A stretch of DNA of 15,920 bases from Paraphysomonas bandaiensis (lineage: Eukaryota > Protista > Chrysophyceae): contig CBFFRP010000483.1 of NCBI GenBank assembly GCA_965644295.1, forward strand, positions 1 through 15,920, read 5' to 3'. Made by a program: the position numbers and the translations under genes. The notes beneath the pieces were generated by a model. The model had not been told where the DNA came from and did not search any database. It saw only the letters and a list, made by a program, of their open reading frames with translations. Of the stretch, positions 1,936-12,688 are shown one piece after another (positions within the stretch are counted from its first letter, which is position 1; every line of letters starts with the position of its first letter).

Positions 1936-2034
1936 TATGGTCGTACAGCTCTTCTCTTGGCTGCCTCTGGAGGTCACAGAGATACATGTGAATATCTCAT
2001 AAGCAAAGGAGCAGATATCACTATAGGAGGCAGA
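1936..2034 (+). CDS. Ankyrin exon 1: YGRTALLLAASGGHRDTCEYLISKGADITIGGR
   Basis: TATAG| 99 nt |GTAAGT; matches the ankyrin consensus G-x-T-A/P-L-H-x-A-A-x-x-G-H...L-x-x-G-A-D. Confidence 0.92.
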
Positions 2035-5000
2035 GTAAGTAACCCCCCTATACATACATATACAGTGATATACGTACATATACAGTGATATACATACATA
2101 TACAGTGCTAAGAGGGCTCATGTGATGTCATTGTTATTGTTTTATAGGATGGTTCTACAGCTCTTCACGAGGCTGCCTCTAATGGTCACAGAGATACATG
2201 TGAATATCTCATCAGCGAAGGAGCAGATATCACTATAGGAGACAATGTAAGTAACCCCTCTATACATACATATACAGTGATATACATACATATACAGTGA
2301 TATACATGCATATACAGTGATATACATACATATACAGTGCTAAGATATTTTTTATAGGATGGTTCTACAGCTCTTCACAAGGCTGCCTCTGGAGGTCACA
2401 GAGATACATGTGAATATCTCATCAGCGAAGGAGCAGATATCACTATAAGAGACGATGTAAGTAACCCCCCTATACATACATATACAGTGATATACATGCA
2501 TATACAGTGCGAAGAGGGCTCATGTGATGTCATTGTTGTTGTTTTATAGGATGGTTGGACAGCTCTTCACTATGCTGCTCGTAAAGGTCACAGAGATACA
2601 TGTGAATATCTCATCAGCAAAGGAGCAGATATCACTATAAGAGACACTGTAAGTAACCCCCCTATACATACATATACAGTGATATACATGCATATACAGT
2701 GATATACATACATATACAGTGATATACATACATATACAGTGATATACATACATATACAGTGATATACATACATATACAGTGCTAAGAGGGCTCATGTGAT
2801 GTCATTGTTGTTGGTTTATAGAGGGGTTCTACAGCTCTTCACTATGCTGCTCGTAAAGGTCACAGAGATACATGTGAATATCTCATCAGCAAAGGAGCAG
2901 ATATCACTATAAGAGACAATGTAAGTAACCCCCCTATACATACATATACAGTGATATACATACATATACAGTGATATACATGCATATGCAGTGCTAAGAG
3001 GGCTCATGTGATGTCATTGTTGTTGGTTTATAGAGGGGTTGGACAGCTCTTCACGAGGCTGCCTCTGGAGGTCACAGAGATACATGTGAATATCTCATCA
3101 GCAAAGGAGCAGATATCACTATAGGAGACACTGTAAGTAACCCCCGTATACATACATATACAGTGATATACATACATATACAGTGATATACATACATATA
3201 CAGTGATATACATGCATATACAGTGATATACATACATATACAGTGCTAAGAGGGCTCATGTGATGTTATTGTTGTTGTTTTATAGGATGGTTCTACAGCT
3301 CTTCACGAGGCTGCCTCTGGAGGTCACAGAGATACATGTGAATATCTCATCAGGGAAGGAGCAGATGTCACTATAAGAAACGATGTAAGTAACCCCCCTA
3401 TACATACATATACAGTGATATACATACATATACAGTGATATACATACATATACAGTGATATACATACATATACAGTGATATACATACATATACAGTGATA
3501 TACATGCATATACATACACAGTGCTAAGAGGTCATATATAAGTATGCGTATTTTTTGTACTTCACTGACTCATCATGTGAAGACGGTATCTAGATATGAA
3601 TATGCGACGATGCACAGTGCCGCTTCTTTATGATGCTTATTGTTTTGCAGGATGGAGAGACTCCTGTGGACTCGGCAGAAGATGATGAGACGCGTAATGT
3701 CATCAGAAGGGCACATGTTAGTATGCGTGCTGTATGCTTGTTTCTTGTTCGTAGACCCAGAGAGATGACCTCATTGGACCATATGTGCATTGTATAGGCT
3801 GAGAGACAGAGACGGAGGCAGCAAGAGGAGGAGGAAGCTGCTGCAGAGGTATGTGTGTGATGATGATGTGGTTCTATGGTATGATATGTTTGTGTGCCCT
3901 TGACTGCGACCATATATGTATGTGTATAGTTGGCACAGCTGTTAAGGTGAGTAGCACCCACTTATATATGTGCTCAAGCTTCTATATGTGCCACAGAAGC
4001 TGCATTCGAACGAGGTGTTCATATGGCTGCGGAAAATATTTGCCGGTATGACTACAGCATCAACTCCCTTATTCTGATGTCGTTACTCATAGTATTTTTG
4101 CACACATATATTATATGTACTATTATAGGCAGGTGTATATATATGTGCAGTTATATTATGTATACAAGAAGTAACATATAATACTGCTGTGATCACTTGT
4201 AGGCACAAGCATTGACGCCAAGTCGGTGTTCGACAAATTGACAGAAGCACACTTTGATAGCATGGCCATCATTGGGGATAGTGCTAAATATTTGATGGAG
4301 AATAATGGTAGCGAGCTTAAAGTGATGGGCATAACGAACTTGGCTGTCCGTGTCCGACTCATGACGGGCTTAAAAGAGCTTTGCCCTCCCCCCCTGTCTC
4401 CGCCCTCTCCGGTATCCTCTCCTACCTCCCTTTATCGTGTGTCGTCGGGTGAAATTATTGAGAATATACAGCCATTGACTGCGACATCAGCAAGGAGAGG
4501 AGTGTGTATTGGTAACCTTCTGGGTGGCATGTTCTCTGGTAACTTCGTCCATAAAAACTTATACGGTCAATTCGAGAAACATGAAGTCATCATCAAGACC
4601 AATGGACGACAACGAGACTTGCAGCGGGAGTTGCAAAACTTTGCCCTGCTGTTGAAAGCAGGAACAGCCACAGGGTGTGTGCATGTGTACGGGGGTTGTG
4701 GAGAGGGACTTTGCCAGTATATTGTAATGGAGCGCCTCGAGTTTGATTTACGCGTCGTAATAGACCAAGACTACGCCTGGGCAAAGTACGACTGGGTGAA
4801 TCAGTTGGTTTTGGCCTTAAAGGAATTGCATGCATGTGGTTTATGCCACCTGGACCTCAAACCTGCTAATGTGTTGATCGGAGGCAACCAATTGAAATTC
4901 TGTGATTTGGATTGTTCTAGAAGGTTTCGCTGTGTGAATGACCTTGATGGGCCAGAGCTGTGTCGCTGCGATGACAGCACCCCCCCTAAGCTGATATTCT

Positions 5001-6455
5001 CTCAGCCATGGGTGAGTCCCGATGTTTATAACGGCAGTCCAGGTTTGCTCGTAGCCGACCCTGCCATTGATATATTTACTGCCGGGCTGCTGGTGGCGGC
5101 ACTGCTGAATAAAACCGACCCACGACGGCAGGATGTGCTCCCATGGCAAGAGGAGGCGCTCTTAACTAGAGCACTTTCATCCGATGAAACATACCTGAGA
5201 GGTTTACTCGCAGCCAAGATGAAAGGCATCAACAGGGGGTACGTCGACATGGTATTTGCAATGTGCAGGTTCAACCCTGCCGAGAGACCCACGGCTGCTG
5301 AGGTGGTGGACCAGATTGCGGATCTAGGATTCACTCGAGCCCATCGCAAAGACCAAGAGACACTTCATCACGTTCAAAGGGAGAATAAGTTCTTGCGACA
5401 TGATGTGATAGAGCGACTGTCTTCCCTACATGAGCAGTGGGCGGAGTCCATTCAGTCGGTGATTGCGAACAACAATCAATTTCAGCAGAAAATTGAGCAA
5501 TTTGAAGATAAGCGCTCGAGAATGCAAGCTGAGGATGCAGCTCGGGCGGAGGCGACTCAACAAAGCATTATCCAATTGACCGATGCGATGAGAGATATGC
5601 AGGGAAACCCGTCGTTAGTAGGTGCCCTGGATGCACTCTCTGCACAAATGGACTCTCTACACAATAGCCTCGCACAGTTGTTGAGAGGCACTCACACCAT
5701 CCCCACCCTCATGATTGTCCTTCCTGAAATCAAAGATCAATCGATGACGGGATATCTGCGCAGAGGGGTAACTCGAGTTTTCACTCAGAAGTACACCCTC
5801 TTCTTCCTCTGCAGCCACACCCGCGGCATCGCCCCTTGTGGGCCAAATGGAAAAGGTGATGAGGACTATAATATATACATGTGCATGCTTGTTGGTGCTG
5901 GTTATATATATATACATATATACGTTATTACATACGTGTTTGTCTGTGTGACATGTTACATATTACACATGTGTCTGAACTCTGTGCTGTAAAGGCTACC
6001 CTATCAAAGTCTATCGGGAGTGGCTAATAAAAGCCGGTCCTGTGCTGAAGCTCGGTCTAGTGCTCCTGAAGCTCGCCCTGTCATTAGTGGGGGGCATCCC
6101 TCTACCAGGTGTGATTGAGGCTTTGGGCACTGACCTGGATGTCCACAAGCGCTATGTGGATAAGGCGCTCTCTCTGGTCAACATGCCAGATAAGATAGAG
6201 GAGATTACGGAAGAGAAACTGGATAGTGTGGTGGATGCAGAGGACCCTACTGAGATGCTGAAGCAGATCGATGCCTCCACCGAGGACAGCAGACTGGCGT
6301 ATGAAACCATTAGGGAGTTACTGGAGAAAAGAGAGGGATACAACATAGCCACGACCTGTGGTCTGCGGCAAGTGGTGTGTCGCAATGGCAAGTGCGGGTG
6401 GGTCCTCAACAAGGACGACGTGCAGAAGGCATATGAAGACGCCAACAGTTTTTAA
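1936..6455 (+). CDS. Spliced gene: ankyrin repeats (7 + cap) - SAM - protein kinase - coiled coil - hydrophobic C-terminal domain; about 990 aa, start codon not identified
   Basis: Exon model, all introns GT-AG and frame-consistent: 1936-2034, 2148-2246, 2358-2456, 2550-2648, 2822-2920, 3034-3132, 3286-3384, 3651-3716, 3798-3848, 3997-4045, 4203-5855, 5995-6455. It joins ORF-track entries 4226.. and 6042.. in frame. Confidence 0.8.
2148..2246 (+). CDS. Ankyrin exon 2: DGSTALHEAASNGHRDTCEYLISEGADITIGDN
   Basis: TATAG| 99 nt |GTAAGT. Confidence 0.93.
2358..2456 (+). CDS. Ankyrin exon 3: DGSTALHKAASGGHRDTCEYLISEGADITIRDD
   Basis: TATAG| 99 nt |GTAAGT. Confidence 0.93.
2550..2648 (+). CDS. Ankyrin exon 4: DGWTALHYAARKGHRDTCEYLISKGADITIRDT
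   Basis: TATAG| 99 nt |GTAAGT. Confidence 0.93.
2822..2920 (+). CDS. Ankyrin exon 5: RGSTALHYAARKGHRDTCEYLISKGADITIRDN
   Basis: TATAG| 99 nt |GTAAGT. Confidence 0.93.
3034..3132 (+). CDS. Ankyrin exon 6: RGWTALHEAASGGHRDTCEYLISKGADITIGDT
   Basis: TATAG| 99 nt |GTAAGT. Confidence 0.93.
3286..3384 (+). CDS. Ankyrin exon 7: DGSTALHEAASGGHRDTCEYLIREGADVTIRND
   Basis: TATAG| 99 nt |GTAAGT. Confidence 0.93.
3651..3716 (+). CDS. Ankyrin C-cap exon: DGETPVDSAEDDETRNVIRRAH
   Basis: TTTTGCAG| ... |GTTAGT, phase 0; G-x-T-P-x-D-x-A capping pattern. Confidence 0.85.
3798..3848 (+). CDS. Charged helical linker exon: AERQRRRQQEEEEAAAE
   Basis: TATAG| ... |GTATGT, phase 0. Confidence 0.75.
3997..4045 (+). 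CDS. Exon encoding the start of a SAM domain: KLHSNEVFIWLRKIFA(G)
   Basis: CACAG| ... G|GTATGA. EVxxWL matches SAM helix 1, and phase 1 fits the acceptor at 4202/4203. Confidence 0.65.
4203..5855 (+). CDS. Large exon: rest of SAM domain, Pro/Ser linker, protein kinase domain, coiled coil, start of C-terminal domain
   Basis: SAM-like ELKVMGITNLAVRVRLMTGLKEL. Kinase motifs VIIK, RELQN, IVME, HLDLKPANVL, KFCDLD, WVSPD, DIFTAG and NPAERPTA. Q/E-rich heptads at about 5400-5690. Confidence 0.88.
5995..6455 (+). CDS. Last exon of the ANK-SAM-kinase gene
   Basis: The AAG| acceptor in phase 1 gives PCGPNGK-G-YPIKVYREWLIKAGPVLKLGLVLLKLALSLVGGIPLPG..., in frame with ORF 6042..6455. Confidence 0.8.
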
Positions 6456-6827
6456 GTAGTGCGTGGCAATACACATACCACCGCCGTGAAGATAATACAT
6501 ACATGTAGCTGTTATCTGTTGTGTGTACGAATAACTTGTGTCTTGTGTAAGTGTGTTCGACAGTCAGTGAACCTACTAGTATGGGAGGGTTTGCGTTGTG
6601 CTCTGTTCCCCATCAGTGCATCATCCAACACAACATGTGTATATTCTGTCAACTTTTGTCATATTTGGATGGTGAAATAACGTTACGCAGACAATAGTCA
6701 ATCAGTAAATTATAATCAATATATGTCTCATCATTCGTTGGTATTAATAACTATTGTTCTTAATTGTACACAGTACTGAGTGAATTATTCTAGGAGAGTT
6801 ATAGTAAAATTGAGATGTTGTATGTTG

Positions 6828-7016
6828 TGTTGAGATCTGAAGATTCTATATACTTGCAATTGAGTGCAGTATTATGTGAGATGCAAGGATCGAAAGATAT
6901 ATATGTAATTAGTACATTATATTGTGTAGTATGAAACTGAAGTAGAAGTGGGTGACTATACAGGATACGATCACTGAGTGTGTGGTTTGTACACTATAGT
7001 AGTAAATGAATGGTGT
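6828..7016 (+). repeat. 5' LTR (189 bp, lacking the last 6 nt)
   Basis: Identical by eye to 9451-9639; starts TGTTG. Confidence 0.93.
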
Positions 7017-9326
7017 AGGGAAGGACTGGGAGGACAAAGCAATGACAGGTTATTTCATAGGGTATCCAGCTGATCGAAAAGGATACAAGGTGCTAGTGGG
7101 GGACACCGTAGTACACTCTGTACACGTATTATTTGATGAATCGGTACCTGAGAGGTCTCAGGATTATTATAGAGAGCTGGAGGAGGCTCAAGTGGCTATA
7201 GATCCCGAGGCTCGTCAACCGGGTGAGTTTGAGTATCTTATCGGAAAGCACCATGAGGATGGTGGTCTGCTATACAAGACTAACAGAGTGGTGATAAGGA
7301 AGGGACTTATTGTGGGATACCGGTCGTTGGTTACTGGTAACCAGGTTCAAGTGGAGGATAAAACTCCTATTCATATTGCTGACATCAAGAAGATGACAGA
7401 GGATCTTGCGCAGAGGGTGGTTAGGGCCAGAGTTACTGACAACCGTGACGGCGGTATCAGCGGAGTGGTGCCACAGCAGTCGGAAAGTGGGCAGGTGCAG
7501 CCCCAGGCTGACTCAGCATTACCTTCGGGGGAAGGGACCCCTGCCGAGAATCATCCGCACGGCAAACGCGCAAGAACTCCAAGGACGGTAACGAATGTGT
7601 CGGTGTTAGGACAAATCCATCATTTGAGTGATGAGAGTGATGTGAGTGACCTTTTACAGGAGGCAGACTCAGTGTGGATGTCAGCGGAAGAGTCGACAGT
7701 GCCTCAGACACATCGTGAGTCCTTGGAGAGTGCCGAGCACAGGGAGTGGAGACGAGCTCGCCGTGTAGAGCGAGAGGGTTTGGCGAAGCGAGATACTATG
7801 GAGGTGACTCGTATACCGGACGGAGTCGTCCCACTGCACTCCAAGTACGTCTATGGAAAGAAGTACGATAAGGAGGGAGAGGTCCGCCGATATAAGGCTC
7901 GTCTTGTAGCAATCGGTTGTGGACAGCAGTCGAGTGGTTGGGCGAACCATTTCGCACCCGTTGTTAAGGGGGTAACAGTGCGACTGTTAATCGCCATAGC
8001 TTTCGTGATGAACATGGTAATTCATCAACTGGATGTGTCTAACGCATTTCTATATGCAGATATAGAGGGGGACGTATATATGAAGGCAACTCCGGACTTT
8101 CAGCTGCCTGAGGGGTACTGCTTTAAGCTGAAGAAGTCGTTATACGGGCTTCGGAGTTCCCCGCGGTCGTGGTGGAAAACATTGGATAAATTCATACGAT
8201 CTATGCATTTTAAACCATGTGTATTAGACCCGTGTTTGTATTATCAGTATAAGGGCGATGAATTGATATTATTAACGATATATGTGGATGATATCCTAGT
8301 GTTAGGTCGTGATGTCAACATGGTGAAGGATATTAAAGCTCAACTGTGTGCCCGGTTTGATATGAAGGATATGGGCGAGATGGAACATTTTCTGAATGTT
8401 CGAGTCACAAGAGAACGCCAGAGTATATTCGTCTTGACCAATCAGTATATGCGGCTAAGATCTTAGAAAAGTTTGAAAAGTATCTTGGGCCACCGCGAAA
8501 GGTACGGAAGAGTCCTCTACCGGCGGAAGCAATGGATTTAGTGGCAAAAGGGGCGCGGCATGAGCATACCGAGGAGGAACAGCTTATAGTAGATAACTTC
8601 CCATATCGGCCGCTGATAGGTGCATTACTATATCTATCGATGAACACGAGGCCGGATATTGCCTATGCAGTGGGAGTACTGTCTCGGTTCAGTAATAAGG
8701 TGAATATTGAAGTATGCAAGCTATTAACACACGTATGGCAATATATTCGTGGTTCTGTTGACAAAGGGATTCAATATGGGAGTAGACGGTTCGACTTCCA
8801 TATGTTTACTGACGCGGATTGGGCGGGAGACCAGCTCTCCAGGAAGTCCACGTCGGGGTACGTTGGGTTTGCAGCGGGAGGGCCTATAGTCTGGCAGTCC
8901 AAACTGCAGACGACAGTGGCAACGACAAGCATGCAGTCTGAGTATCAGTGTATTTACTCGGGTCTCCAAGAAGTGCTATGGGTTCGGGGGGTGACGGGTG
9001 AGATTAAGTTGAGGCTCATCAAACCCACACCATTCTTCATCGACAGTCAGAGTGCCCAGGATTTGGCCGAAAACCCAGTGTTTCACAAGAAGTCGAAGCA
9101 CATTGAGATTAAGTATCACATGGTGAGAGAGCACGTGGATCCCAATCAGTTCAATACGATTAAGTTAGTGCATGTGCATACATCGCAACAAGCAGCAGAT
9201 ATTTATACAAAGTCATTGGTTGGATTATCATATATGGAGCAGAGAAAGAGAAATCTTGGAGAGAAAATTAAGAGTTCCACTGAAGTGATTAATGAGGGAC
9301 CAAGGGATAAAAGAAGACGCAAGTAG
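7006..9326 (+). pseudogene. pol: Copia pol remnant: post-integrase region, reverse transcriptase, RNase H; one frameshift at about 8411-8414
   Basis: GYFIGY/KGYKV/VLFDE; YKARLVA, QLDVSNAFL, LKKSLYGL, YVDDIL; TDADWAG, IDSQSA, KHIEIKYH, AADIYTK. Removing one GA from AAGAGAACG restores VTRTPEYIRLDQSVYAAKILEKF and joins ORFs 7006..8466 and 8532..9326. Confidence 0.92.
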
Positions 9327-9441
9327 GTACTGAGTTTTTTAGACAGAGGTTTAGACTTAGAGATGAGTCTATTTTACTGTCAAGAATTTTTTTATCTCAG
9401 GCATTCAATAGCTGGGAGGCGTCATAGTACAACACTCAATT

Positions 9442-9450
9442 GAGGGGGAG
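9442..9450 (+). promoter_or_regulatory. Polypurine tract GAGGGGGAG
   Basis: Immediately 5' of the TG that starts the 3' LTR. Confidence 0.9.
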
Positions 9451-9645
9451 TGTTGAGATCTGAAGATTCTATATACTTGCAATTGAGTGCAGTATTATGT
9501 GAGATGCAAGGATCGAAAGATATATATGTAATTAGTACATTATATTGTGTAGTATGAAACTGAAGTAGAAGTGGGTGACTATACAGGATACGATCACTGA
9601 GTGTGTGGTTTGTACACTATAGTAGTAAATGAATGGTGTTGAACA
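9451..9645 (+). repeat. 3' LTR (195 bp, TGTT...AACA)
   Basis: TG...CA ends with a short terminal inverted repeat, following the PPT. Confidence 0.93.
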
Positions 9646-9955
9646 CATCGTACACAACTTAGGTTCTTTATCATGTAATGTTTATAATTTCATCTTATCA
9701 GTTGAGAATAGTAAACCTTAGCAAATAATGTCAACTTCTGTTATGTTGAGTTTTGCCGCTTGTGAGCAATTGCAAGCTGTAGTTAGGTATTTAAATTATA
9801 ACTCAATGTATATCCTATTAGCTATAACTGTCAAACTGAAGTATTGTATCACGACTGTACCAGATACAGAAGTTAATCATTAGGGATAAAAAACAGGGAG
9901 ACAAGCCCTTTTTCTAACCCCAAATCACCCTTGACCACAACCTCCTCAAGCTCAT

Positions 9956-10935: not shown

Positions 10936-10936
10936 T

Positions 10937-12688
10937 CTCGTCATATAGAACACAATGGACACGAGTCCTCATCACTCGCACCCCCATCGATAGCACTCCA
11001 TCTATCTCATGAGGAGATGCTCTCATCTTATAGAACACAATGGACACGAGTCCTCATCACTCGCACCCCCATCGATAGCACTCCATCTATCTCATGAGGA
11101 GATGCTCTCATCTTATAGAACACAATGGACACGAGTCCTCATCACTCGCACCCCCATCGATAGCACTCCATCTATCTCATGAGGAGATGCTCTCATCTTA
11201 TAGAACACAATGGACACGAGTCCTCATCACTCGCACCCCCATCGATAGCACTCCATCTATCTCATGAGGAGATGCTCTCATCTTATAGAACACAATGGAC
11301 ACGAGTCCTCATCACTCGCACCCCCATCGATAGCACTCCATCTATCTCATGAGGAGATGCTCTCATCTTATAGAACACAATGGACACGAGTCCTCATCAC
11401 TCGCACCCCCATCGATAGCACTCCATCTATCTCATGAGGAGATGCTCTCATCTTATAGAACACAATGGACACGAGTCCTCATCACTCGCACCCCCATCGA
11501 TAGCACTCCATCTATCTCATGAGGAGATGCTCTCATCTTATAGAACACAATGGACACGAGTCCTCATCACTCGCACCCCCATCGATAGCACTCCATCTAT
11601 CTCATGAGGAGATGCTCTCATCTTATAGAACACAATGGACACGAGTCCTCATCACTCGCACCCCCATCGATAGCACTCCATCTATCTCATGAGGAGATGC
11701 TCTCATCTTATAGAACACAATGGACACGAGTCCTCATCACTCGCACCCCCATCGATAGCACTCCATCTATCTCATGAGGAGATGCTCTCATCTTATAGAA
11801 CACAATGGACACGAGTCCTCATCACTCGCACCCCCATCGATAGCACTCCATCTATCTCATGAGGAGATGCTCTCATCTTATAGAACACAATGGACACGAG
11901 TCCTCATCACTCGCACCCCCATCGATAGCACTCCATCTATCTCATGAGGAGATGCTCTCATCTTATAGAACACAATGGACACGAGTCCTCATCACTCGCA
12001 CCCCCATCGATAGCACTCCATCTATCTCATGAGGAGATGCTCTCATCTTATAGAACACAATGGACACGAGTCCTCATCACTCGCACCCCCATCGATAGCA
12101 CTCCATCTATCTCATGAGGAGATGCTCTCATCTTATAGAACACAATGGACACGAGTCCTCATCACTCGCACCCCCATCGATAGCACTCCATCTATCTCAT
12201 GAGGAGATGCTCTCATCTTATAGAACACAATGGACACGAGTCCTCATCACTCGCACCCCCATCGATAGCACTCCATCTATCTCATGAACTACTCTCGTCA
12301 TATAGAACACAATGGACACGAGTCCTCATCACTCGCACCCCCATCGATAGCACTCCATCTATCTCATGAGGAGATGCTCTCATCTTATAGAACACAATGG
12401 ACACGAGTCCTCATCACTCGCACCCCCATCGATAGCACTCCATCTATCTCATGAACTACTCTCGTCATATAGAACACAATGGACACGAGTCCTCATCACT
12501 CGCACCCCCATCGATAGCACTCCATCTATCTCATGAGGAGATGCTCTCATCTTATAGAACACAATGGACACGAGTCCTCATCACTCGCACCCCCATCGAT
12601 AGCACTCCATCTATCTCATGAACTGCTCTCGTCATATAGAACACAATGGACACGAGTCCTCATCACTCGCACCCCCATCGATAGCACT
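10937..12688. repeat. 85-bp tandem satellite, about 20.6 units
   Basis: Unit TAGAACACAATGGACACGAGTCCTCATCACTCGCACCCCCATCGATAGCACTCCATCTATCTCATGAGGAGATGCTCTCATCTTA from 10946. Fifteen identical copies are followed by 82-bp variants at 12221, 12388 and 12555 alternating with 85-bp units. Confidence 0.97.

Follow-up and report, generated by a model that had tools for sequence, protein, structure and literature searches.

In fungal NLR proteins, the WD40, ANK and TPR sensor domains consist of near-identical repeats that differ at a few hypervariable, positively selected surface positions, and unequal crossover and/or gene conversion reshuffles these repeats both inside a locus and from one locus to another (PMC1805685; PMC12222747; PMC13449251). 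In Ectocarpus, LRR and TPR genes carry one repeat per exon and the exons are shuffled (PMC3341825; PMC11378527). Here we describe an array of ankyrin exons in the chrysophyte Paraphysomonas bandaiensis, located on a contig (C483; CBFFRP010000483.1) that was analysed over its entire 15.9 kb and is referred to below as the window; the assembly to which it belongs (GCA_965644295.1) comprises 62.5 Mb in 669 contigs. Seven 99-nt phase-0 exons lie between positions 1936 and 3384, frame 0 being open in each and each encoding one 33-residue repeat, and the stretch is predicted from its sequence to be the binding array of an ankyrin-kinase gene. These exons, here called cassettes, are mosaics of codon alleles which are held in common by a genome-wide family, and it is likely that they were generated by unequal crossover together with short or patchy gene conversion among cassettes of high identity under diversifying selection.

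Ankyrin exons of the window

The repeats were recognised as ankyrin by their sequence (..TALH.AA..GH…GAD..). Exons were translated singly with borders predicted from sequence, and the Pfam scan covered the continuous kinase frame further downstream. Every cassette of the window is bordered by ..tatag upstream and gtaagtaacc downstream. The introns between cassettes have fixed ends flanking 2–6 copies of a 20-nt minisatellite, their lengths changing in steps of ~20 nt. The features of the array are as follows.

1936..2034, + strand: ankyrin exon 1, with a Y-G-R head, LLAASGG and a ..GGR tail; unique as a whole, no private alleles, four segments of other cassettes required to compose it
2148..2246, + strand: ankyrin exon 2, D-S, E8, AASN, GDN; unique as a whole, equal to two segments of other cassettes
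2358..2456, + strand: ankyrin exon 3, D-S, K8, AASGG, RDD; unique as a whole, 1 nt different from two cassettes of contig C508
2550..2648, + strand: ankyrin exon 4, D-W, YAARK, RDT; the commonest cassette type of the genome, with 11 identical copies on C508 and C526
2822..2920, + strand: ankyrin exon 5, a mosaic of an R-S head, with G at intron position -8 (2814), and an exon 4-like YAARK body
3034..3132, + strand: ankyrin exon 6, a mosaic of an R head (intron G at 3026), W3, E8-AASGG, K24 and GDT; four segments required
3286..3384, + strand: ankyrin exon 7, D-S, EAASGG, IRE..V..RND; equal to two segments of C526 cassettes
2035-2147, 2247-2357, 2457-2549, 2649-2821, 2921-3033 and 3133-3285, + strand: the six introns between cassettes (the span 2035..3285 includes exons 2-6)

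An earlier note on this DNA had pointed to three pairs of sites at which all four allele combinations occur, and rereading of the exons bore this out. At codons 1 and 3, which are separated by four invariant nucleotides, D-S is found in exons 2, 3 and 7, D-W in exon 4, R-S in exon 5 and R-W in exon 6. Codon 3 combines with codons 8–12 as W-YAARK (exon 4), S-YAARK (exon 5), W-EAASG (exon 6) and S-EAASG (exon 7), and codon 31 with codon 33 as G-N (exon 2), R-N (exon 5), R-T (exon 4) and G-T (exon 6). The pairing of the AGG allele of codon 1 with an intron variant, likewise proposed, was identified as a G at intron position -8 (window positions 2814 and 3026), and 37 of 120 informative site pairs in the window failed the suggested four-gamete test.

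The pairwise homoplasy index (PHI) of the window alone was marginal (p ~0.02 for near neighbours, not significant over wider spans). The window by itself therefore gives no statistical proof of recombination, and the strong statistics are those of the genome-wide pool. The pairs codon 1 × 3 and codon 3 × 8–12 depend on two cassettes, and the alleles of codons 31 and 33 differ by single bases (AGA/GGA and AAT/ACT). In junction searches spanning the whole genome, the R-W and W-E junctions each occurred once in the 62.5 Mb, both in exon 6 of the window, while the S-Y-AAR junction occurred twice, in exon 5 and on the collinear contig C124. The window happens to hold rare recombinants, namely exons 5 and 6.

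A genome-wide pool of cassettes

The larger genomic pool from which the cassettes had been suspected to draw was found by a pattern search of the genome with a 29-nt invariant core, which gave 141 matches. It was possible to extract 132 cassettes (C526, 75; C508, 32; C640, 8; C483, 7; C124, 5; C374, 3; C639, 2), and the 131 intact ones, representing 76 distinct nucleotide sequences, were analysed. More than 120 sister exons outside the window share the same codon variants; a scan of metagenome contigs for the same core gave no match. All 131 intact cassettes have 99 nt, an open frame 0 and AG/GT flanks, so that with this symmetric phase any set of exons stays in frame. Whole units, including their introns, are 84–97% identical between contigs, which is above the ~80% used to recognise repeats of high internal conservation (HIC).

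Variation in the pool is almost confined to codons 1, 3, 8, 10–12, 22–24, 28 and 31–33, where it takes the form of discrete and often multi-base alleles, such as GAT/AGG/TAT/GGG/GTT at codon 1, TCT/TGG at codon 3 and GCC-TCT-GGA versus GCT-CGT-AAA at codons 10–12. Half-way codons (TGT, TCG, GCT+TCT) were found in none of the 131 cassettes. The ratio of nonsynonymous to synonymous polymorphism (pN/pS) is 2.4 over the whole pool; at the eight most variable codons (1, 3, 8, 11, 12, 31–33) pN is 0.41 against a pS of 0.085, and the framework codons have a pN of 0.026 and a pS of 0.042.

Three of the other arrays have irregular ends or members. On C508 (L034, positions 8340–9800) the 32-cassette array stops inside an intron minisatellite and is followed by a short inverted CCCTAA stretch and then, up to the contig end, by ~1.4 kb of (TTAGGG)n; this array is capped by a telomere and has no gene end. 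On C526 (L031, positions 9745–9760) a plus-strand array of 30 cassettes and a minus-strand array of 45 meet tail to tail, and at the junction a minisatellite passes without a break into a reverse-complemented cassette that is truncated within its invariant core. The junction may mark an inversion breakpoint or else be a mis-join; a simple foldback artefact was rejected, the two arms not being mirror images. On C640 (L035, ~5112) a broken cassette, lacking codons 1–11 as well as the acceptor site, stands in an otherwise intact array.

Evidence for exchange between cassettes

Among the 76 distinct cassettes, 60 contain no nucleotide that is private to them and differ from others by combination alone, and 46 of these 60 can be written as two segments of other cassettes. 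The same is seen in the window, all codon alleles of which are present elsewhere, yet six of its seven cassettes, taken whole, are found nowhere else. A tree without homoplasy, which the earlier note had named as the outcome that would overturn its reading, is excluded by the haplotype bound (H-S-1 = 21–22): the 53–54 mutational steps would allow at most 54–55 haplotypes, and the 76 seen call for at least 21 additional recombination or recurrent events. PHI, which had been proposed for all cassettes of the genome, gave p = 0.0005 with nucleotides and p = 0.0002–0.0004 with whole codons as characters, the incompatibility between sites growing with distance. Clustering of the hypervariable sites biases this test against, and not for, a significant result.

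Several alleles can be followed by silent bases that accompany them. In 32 of 32 cassettes the silent GCT at codon 10 is paired with CGT at codon 11, and in 22 of 23 the intron -8 G is paired with AGG, so that alleles with such hitch-hikers are identical by descent. Four gametes were nevertheless found in 12 of 23 pairs of multi-base markers, and the silent variants of the intron ends, although linked with the adjacent exon alleles, have also recombined with exon alleles. Since multi-base alleles with silent hitch-hikers are present in all four combinations, exchange between cassettes is real. The multi-base four-gamete results, the haplotype bound and PHI together confirm the suspicion that tandem duplication with point mutation is not sufficient to produce the pattern.

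Probable turnover of arrays on related contigs

The array is followed in the window by the remainder of the predicted gene:

3651..3716, + strand: half-repeat exon (DGETPVD...) that probably caps the C-terminal end, with splice sites predicted from the sequence
4226..5992, + strand: further downstream in this gene, an open frame with a protein kinase domain (Pfam Pkinase, E = 6.8e-17)

Copies of the capping exon with 94% identity come after the arrays on C640 and C124. The window and the large contig C124 are collinear, with 94–98% identity; positions 3784–6831 are 98.2% identical to that contig, and positions 3784–6560, the kinase frame included, are 99.6% identical to C640. Beside kinase sequence that is 98–99.6% identical, the arrays of the window, C124 and C640 consist of seven, five and eight cassettes, respectively, with none in common, which speaks for unequal exchange and a rapid turnover of arrays. 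The genome has at least three full ankyrin-kinase copies as well as cassette-only arrays (the telomere-capped array of C508 and those of C526).

Scale and frequency of exchange

The earlier note had envisaged frequent short-tract conversion or recombination at a very fine scale. Exchange among pooled cassettes has stood up, whereas its being frequent has not, as linkage is strong and the fourth gamete among pairs of multi-base markers is usually a single cassette. The very fine scale is likewise not upheld as worded: tracts are bounded loosely, and the signal at the level of blocks amounts to p = 0.02–0.06. In the pool the counts for D/R at codon 1 against S/W at codon 3 are 53/37/22/1 (D' -0.87, Fisher p = 4e-4), and those for S/W against GCC-TCT/GCT-CGT are 63/6/18/25 (D' 0.69, p = 3e-8). 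Association spans the whole exon and reaches the neighbouring cassette (Cramer's V 0.46–0.59), because whole cassette types and multi-cassette units propagate. Codons 31 and 33, on the other hand, show no linkage in the pool, and as their alleles differ by one base, recurrent mutation is sufficient for that pair.

Patches that were exchanged and are short are nevertheless present. On C526, eight copies of a ~530-nt two-cassette unit, which as duplicates of a higher order also speak for unequal exchange, are nearly identical if the lengths of their intron minisatellites are set aside, and differ mainly by a 4–5-base swap at codons 31–33 of one cassette. Furthermore, 40 out of 85 extended cassettes could be explained as recipients that carry in their interior a multi-base patch matching another cassette exactly, the upper limits on patch length ranging from 5 to 92 nt. 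Tract lengths are only loosely bounded because the framework is invariant and carries no markers; for the same reason a long heteroduplex with patchy mismatch repair is indistinguishable from many tiny tracts. We favour the former. Shuffling that is frequent, ultra-fine or ongoing is not supported.

The events that may have led to the present arrays can be set out as follows. Near-identical framework and intron ends would allow cassettes to misalign and recombine, and unequal crossover would then duplicate or delete a single cassette or a run of several. Through gene conversion, both inside an array and from array to array, multi-base codon alleles that already exist would pass between cassettes, probably by way of heteroduplex with short or patchy mismatch repair, over evolutionary time. 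Codons 1, 3, 8, 11, 12 and 31–33, which are predicted to lie on the binding face, would be kept diverse by selection, and in this manner new binding surfaces, as the earlier note had proposed, may be built. Exons 5 and 6 would be rare recombinants, all of whose alleles are also present in neighbouring cassettes and in other arrays.

Read support and alternative explanations

Read support was assessed over positions 2785–3400 with contigs built from public runs, which are not single molecules. The best match, run X1, has depth in 30 of 30 bins, including bin 3037–3057, which holds the unique junction of exon 6. The depth of that bin is 413 against 7800–9600 in the flanking multi-copy bins, as low as would be expected of single-copy sequence, and no alternative letters were reported for it. 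The mosaic is therefore less likely to be nothing more than an artefact of consensus building or polishing.

A number of points weigh against exchange by crossover and conversion as the source of the mosaics. The cassette set leaves out nine of the 141 core matches, which are situated on other contigs. The patch bounds come from a home-made search for recipient, patch and donor that is minimised over donors and therefore biased low, and they are descriptive. When nine blocks, including the silent intron flanks, are used as characters, the distance signal of PHI falls to p = 0.02–0.06, and because of this the distance signal is not leaned on alone. Local compatibility could partly come from co-selection of neighbouring residues or from multi-nucleotide mutations, and a swap of two bases, for instance TCT/TGG, could arise more than once through tandem double substitution and selection. 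The support from X1 is based on contigs and not on single molecules, the individual contig over 3034–3057 was not seen, and X1 is probably the assembly's own sample. Finally, runs X5, X6 and X7, which bear other organism labels, contain the cassette family with zero depth in bin 3037–3057; this suggests that the exon 6 mosaic is strain-specific.

The explanation that survives best beside exchange is that the mosaics are artefacts of assembly or polishing, in which arrays were collapsed or patches were "converted" in silico by mis-mapped short reads. It would fit a window which is the whole of a small 15.9-kb contig duplicating the C124/C640 locus, R-W and W-E junctions that are singletons in the assembly and are missing from X5, X6 and X7, and the odd inverted junction of C526 that cuts a cassette. 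We nevertheless regard it as unlikely, given that the X1 contigs, built independently from raw reads, cover every bin including the unique junction, that 131 of 131 cassettes are open with no codon a per-base chimera, and that the recombination signal is genome-wide and independent of the window.

Recurrent point mutation, with selection for a few allowed residues, could yield the same alleles repeatedly in the absence of any DNA transfer between cassettes. At codons 8, 12, 32 and 33 most alleles are indeed one base step apart, codons 31 and 33 are unlinked and have single-base alleles, pN far exceeds pS at the hypervariable codons and many of the smallest patches are just 2 nt. However, alleles that differ by 3–6 bases, silent ones included (GCC-TCT vs GCT-CGT; T..GAT vs G..AGG together with its intron base), stand on several backgrounds with no intermediates, silent intron markers too have recombined with exon alleles, and recurrent mutation does not predict an incompatibility that grows with distance. 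The silent hitch-hikers observed show that it cannot be the only cause, and overall we hold this explanation to be quite improbable.

Very little credence can be given to programmed or somatic diversification, in which the cassette-only arrays, one of them subtelomeric, would be reservoirs of silent donors from which short patches are continually copied by conversion into the expressed ankyrin-kinase genes as a clone grows: long arrays without a gene end (32 cassettes running into a telomere on C508, ~75 on C526), three near-identical kinase genes bearing unrelated arrays, the shortness of the exchanged patches and the somatic recombination proposed for the repeat exons of Ectocarpus (PMC3341825) would agree with it, but linkage is strong and recombinants are rare, as in ordinary evolutionary exchange, there are several full genes and not one expression site, and no dedicated machinery or signal sequences were seen, although no search was aimed at them. 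If, against expectation, it were true, a unicellular host would possess a self-renewing, DARPin-like receptor repertoire, that is, the somatic recombination once hypothesised for brown algae. Unequal crossover with short or patchy conversion among the cassettes remains the probable origin of the array.

Other features of the contig

The upstream flank of the array (1150–1695) is 95–99% identical to C585, C567 and C327 and is probably the common 5' region of the gene family. It contains a candidate two-codon first exon, ATG ACA at 1669–1674 followed by gtgtat, the phase of which would match exon 1. Downstream of the capping exon, positions 3784–3892 form an exon-plus-intron unit with a charged AERQRRRQQEEEEAAAE-like segment, of which there is one copy here, ~5 in tandem on C640 and ~10 on C124 (overall about 5–10 copies); it is a second length-variable module of the same gene.

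The first part of the contig (1–1150) is AT-rich, with 27% GC against 45–50% further on, and has coding-like frames, a 30-nt tandem repeat (127–279) and an acidic (ACAGATGAAGAT)n run. Copies of it with 86–92% identity are found on more than 10 other contigs, often less than 2 kb from the contig end, and it could be a mobile or subtelomeric element. Beyond the kinase frame there is a Ty1/copia element (~6831–9742; RVT_2, E = 3.8e-55), which is lacking in the collinear C124 and has a 98.8% identical copy on C374. Positions 10936–12688 are occupied by an 85-nt tandem array (20.7 copies, 97% identity) with strong negative GC skew, across which the collinearity with C124 breaks.

Comparison with known systems

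By analogy, the pattern described here would be the expected product of tandem-repeat recombination already known from fungal and brown-algal receptor genes, and the locus itself reveals no new mechanism. It is a clean example of the way in which a binding surface of a repeat protein may be diversified, with a fixed framework, a finite set of ready-made alleles at each contact codon and recombination that re-deals them. Here the layout of one exon per repeat and the silent hitch-hikers that tag the alleles make it possible to tell exchange from recurrent mutation, which is harder in the fungal cases. With three versions and near-identical flanks, the locus is also tractable for the measurement of conversion tract lengths and rates by long reads.

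The array resembles the WD40 HIC repeats of het-d/het-e/nwd in Podospora anserina in its near-identity at the DNA level, its few variable surface positions with many residue combinations, its differences in copy number (7, 5 and 8 cassettes) and its exchange between loci (exon 4 having 11 copies on C508/C526). Unlike these, the repeat is an ankyrin repeat, each repeat has its own exon with a minisatellite intron, the host is a protist and repeat-induced point mutation (RIP) plays no part. Pkinase is the only Pfam domain in the downstream frame, and the NACHT or NB-ARC domain of an NLR architecture is absent from it; the array would thus work like the sensor domain of a fungal HIC protein but would not belong to an NLR.

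Ectocarpus, which is also a stramenopile, has in common with this locus one repeat per exon, symmetric phase, shuffling among the family and positive selection on binding-face residues. It differs in that its repeats are LRR or TPR in ROCO or NB-ARC genes, in contrast to ANK with a kinase here. The cassettes described here are also far more alike, and have breakpoints inside exons and not whole-exon shuffling alone.

Mosaic binding or antigenic surfaces are also formed by lamprey VLR, chicken Ig pseudogene conversion, Borrelia vlsE and trypanosome VSG, in which the process is somatic or clonal and one expression site is supplied by silent donors. As in these systems, short donor patches in the same framework would give mosaics and some of the candidate donor arrays are subtelomeric (C508), whereas several full ankyrin-kinase genes are present here as opposed to their single expression site.

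The placing of the variable codons on the binding face is predicted from ankyrin and DARPin structures. The DARPin design of Binz and colleagues from 2003 is said to have a fixed framework and a 33-residue module with randomised positions 2, 3, 5, 13, 14 and 33, which presumably correspond to cassette positions 33, 1, 3, 11, 12 and 31. DARPins are, however, a man-made library, while the natural cassettes vary at position 8 too and binding by the natural array is putative. The present array extends the design of HIC repeats with hypervariable sites to ankyrin repeats on a kinase in a protist.

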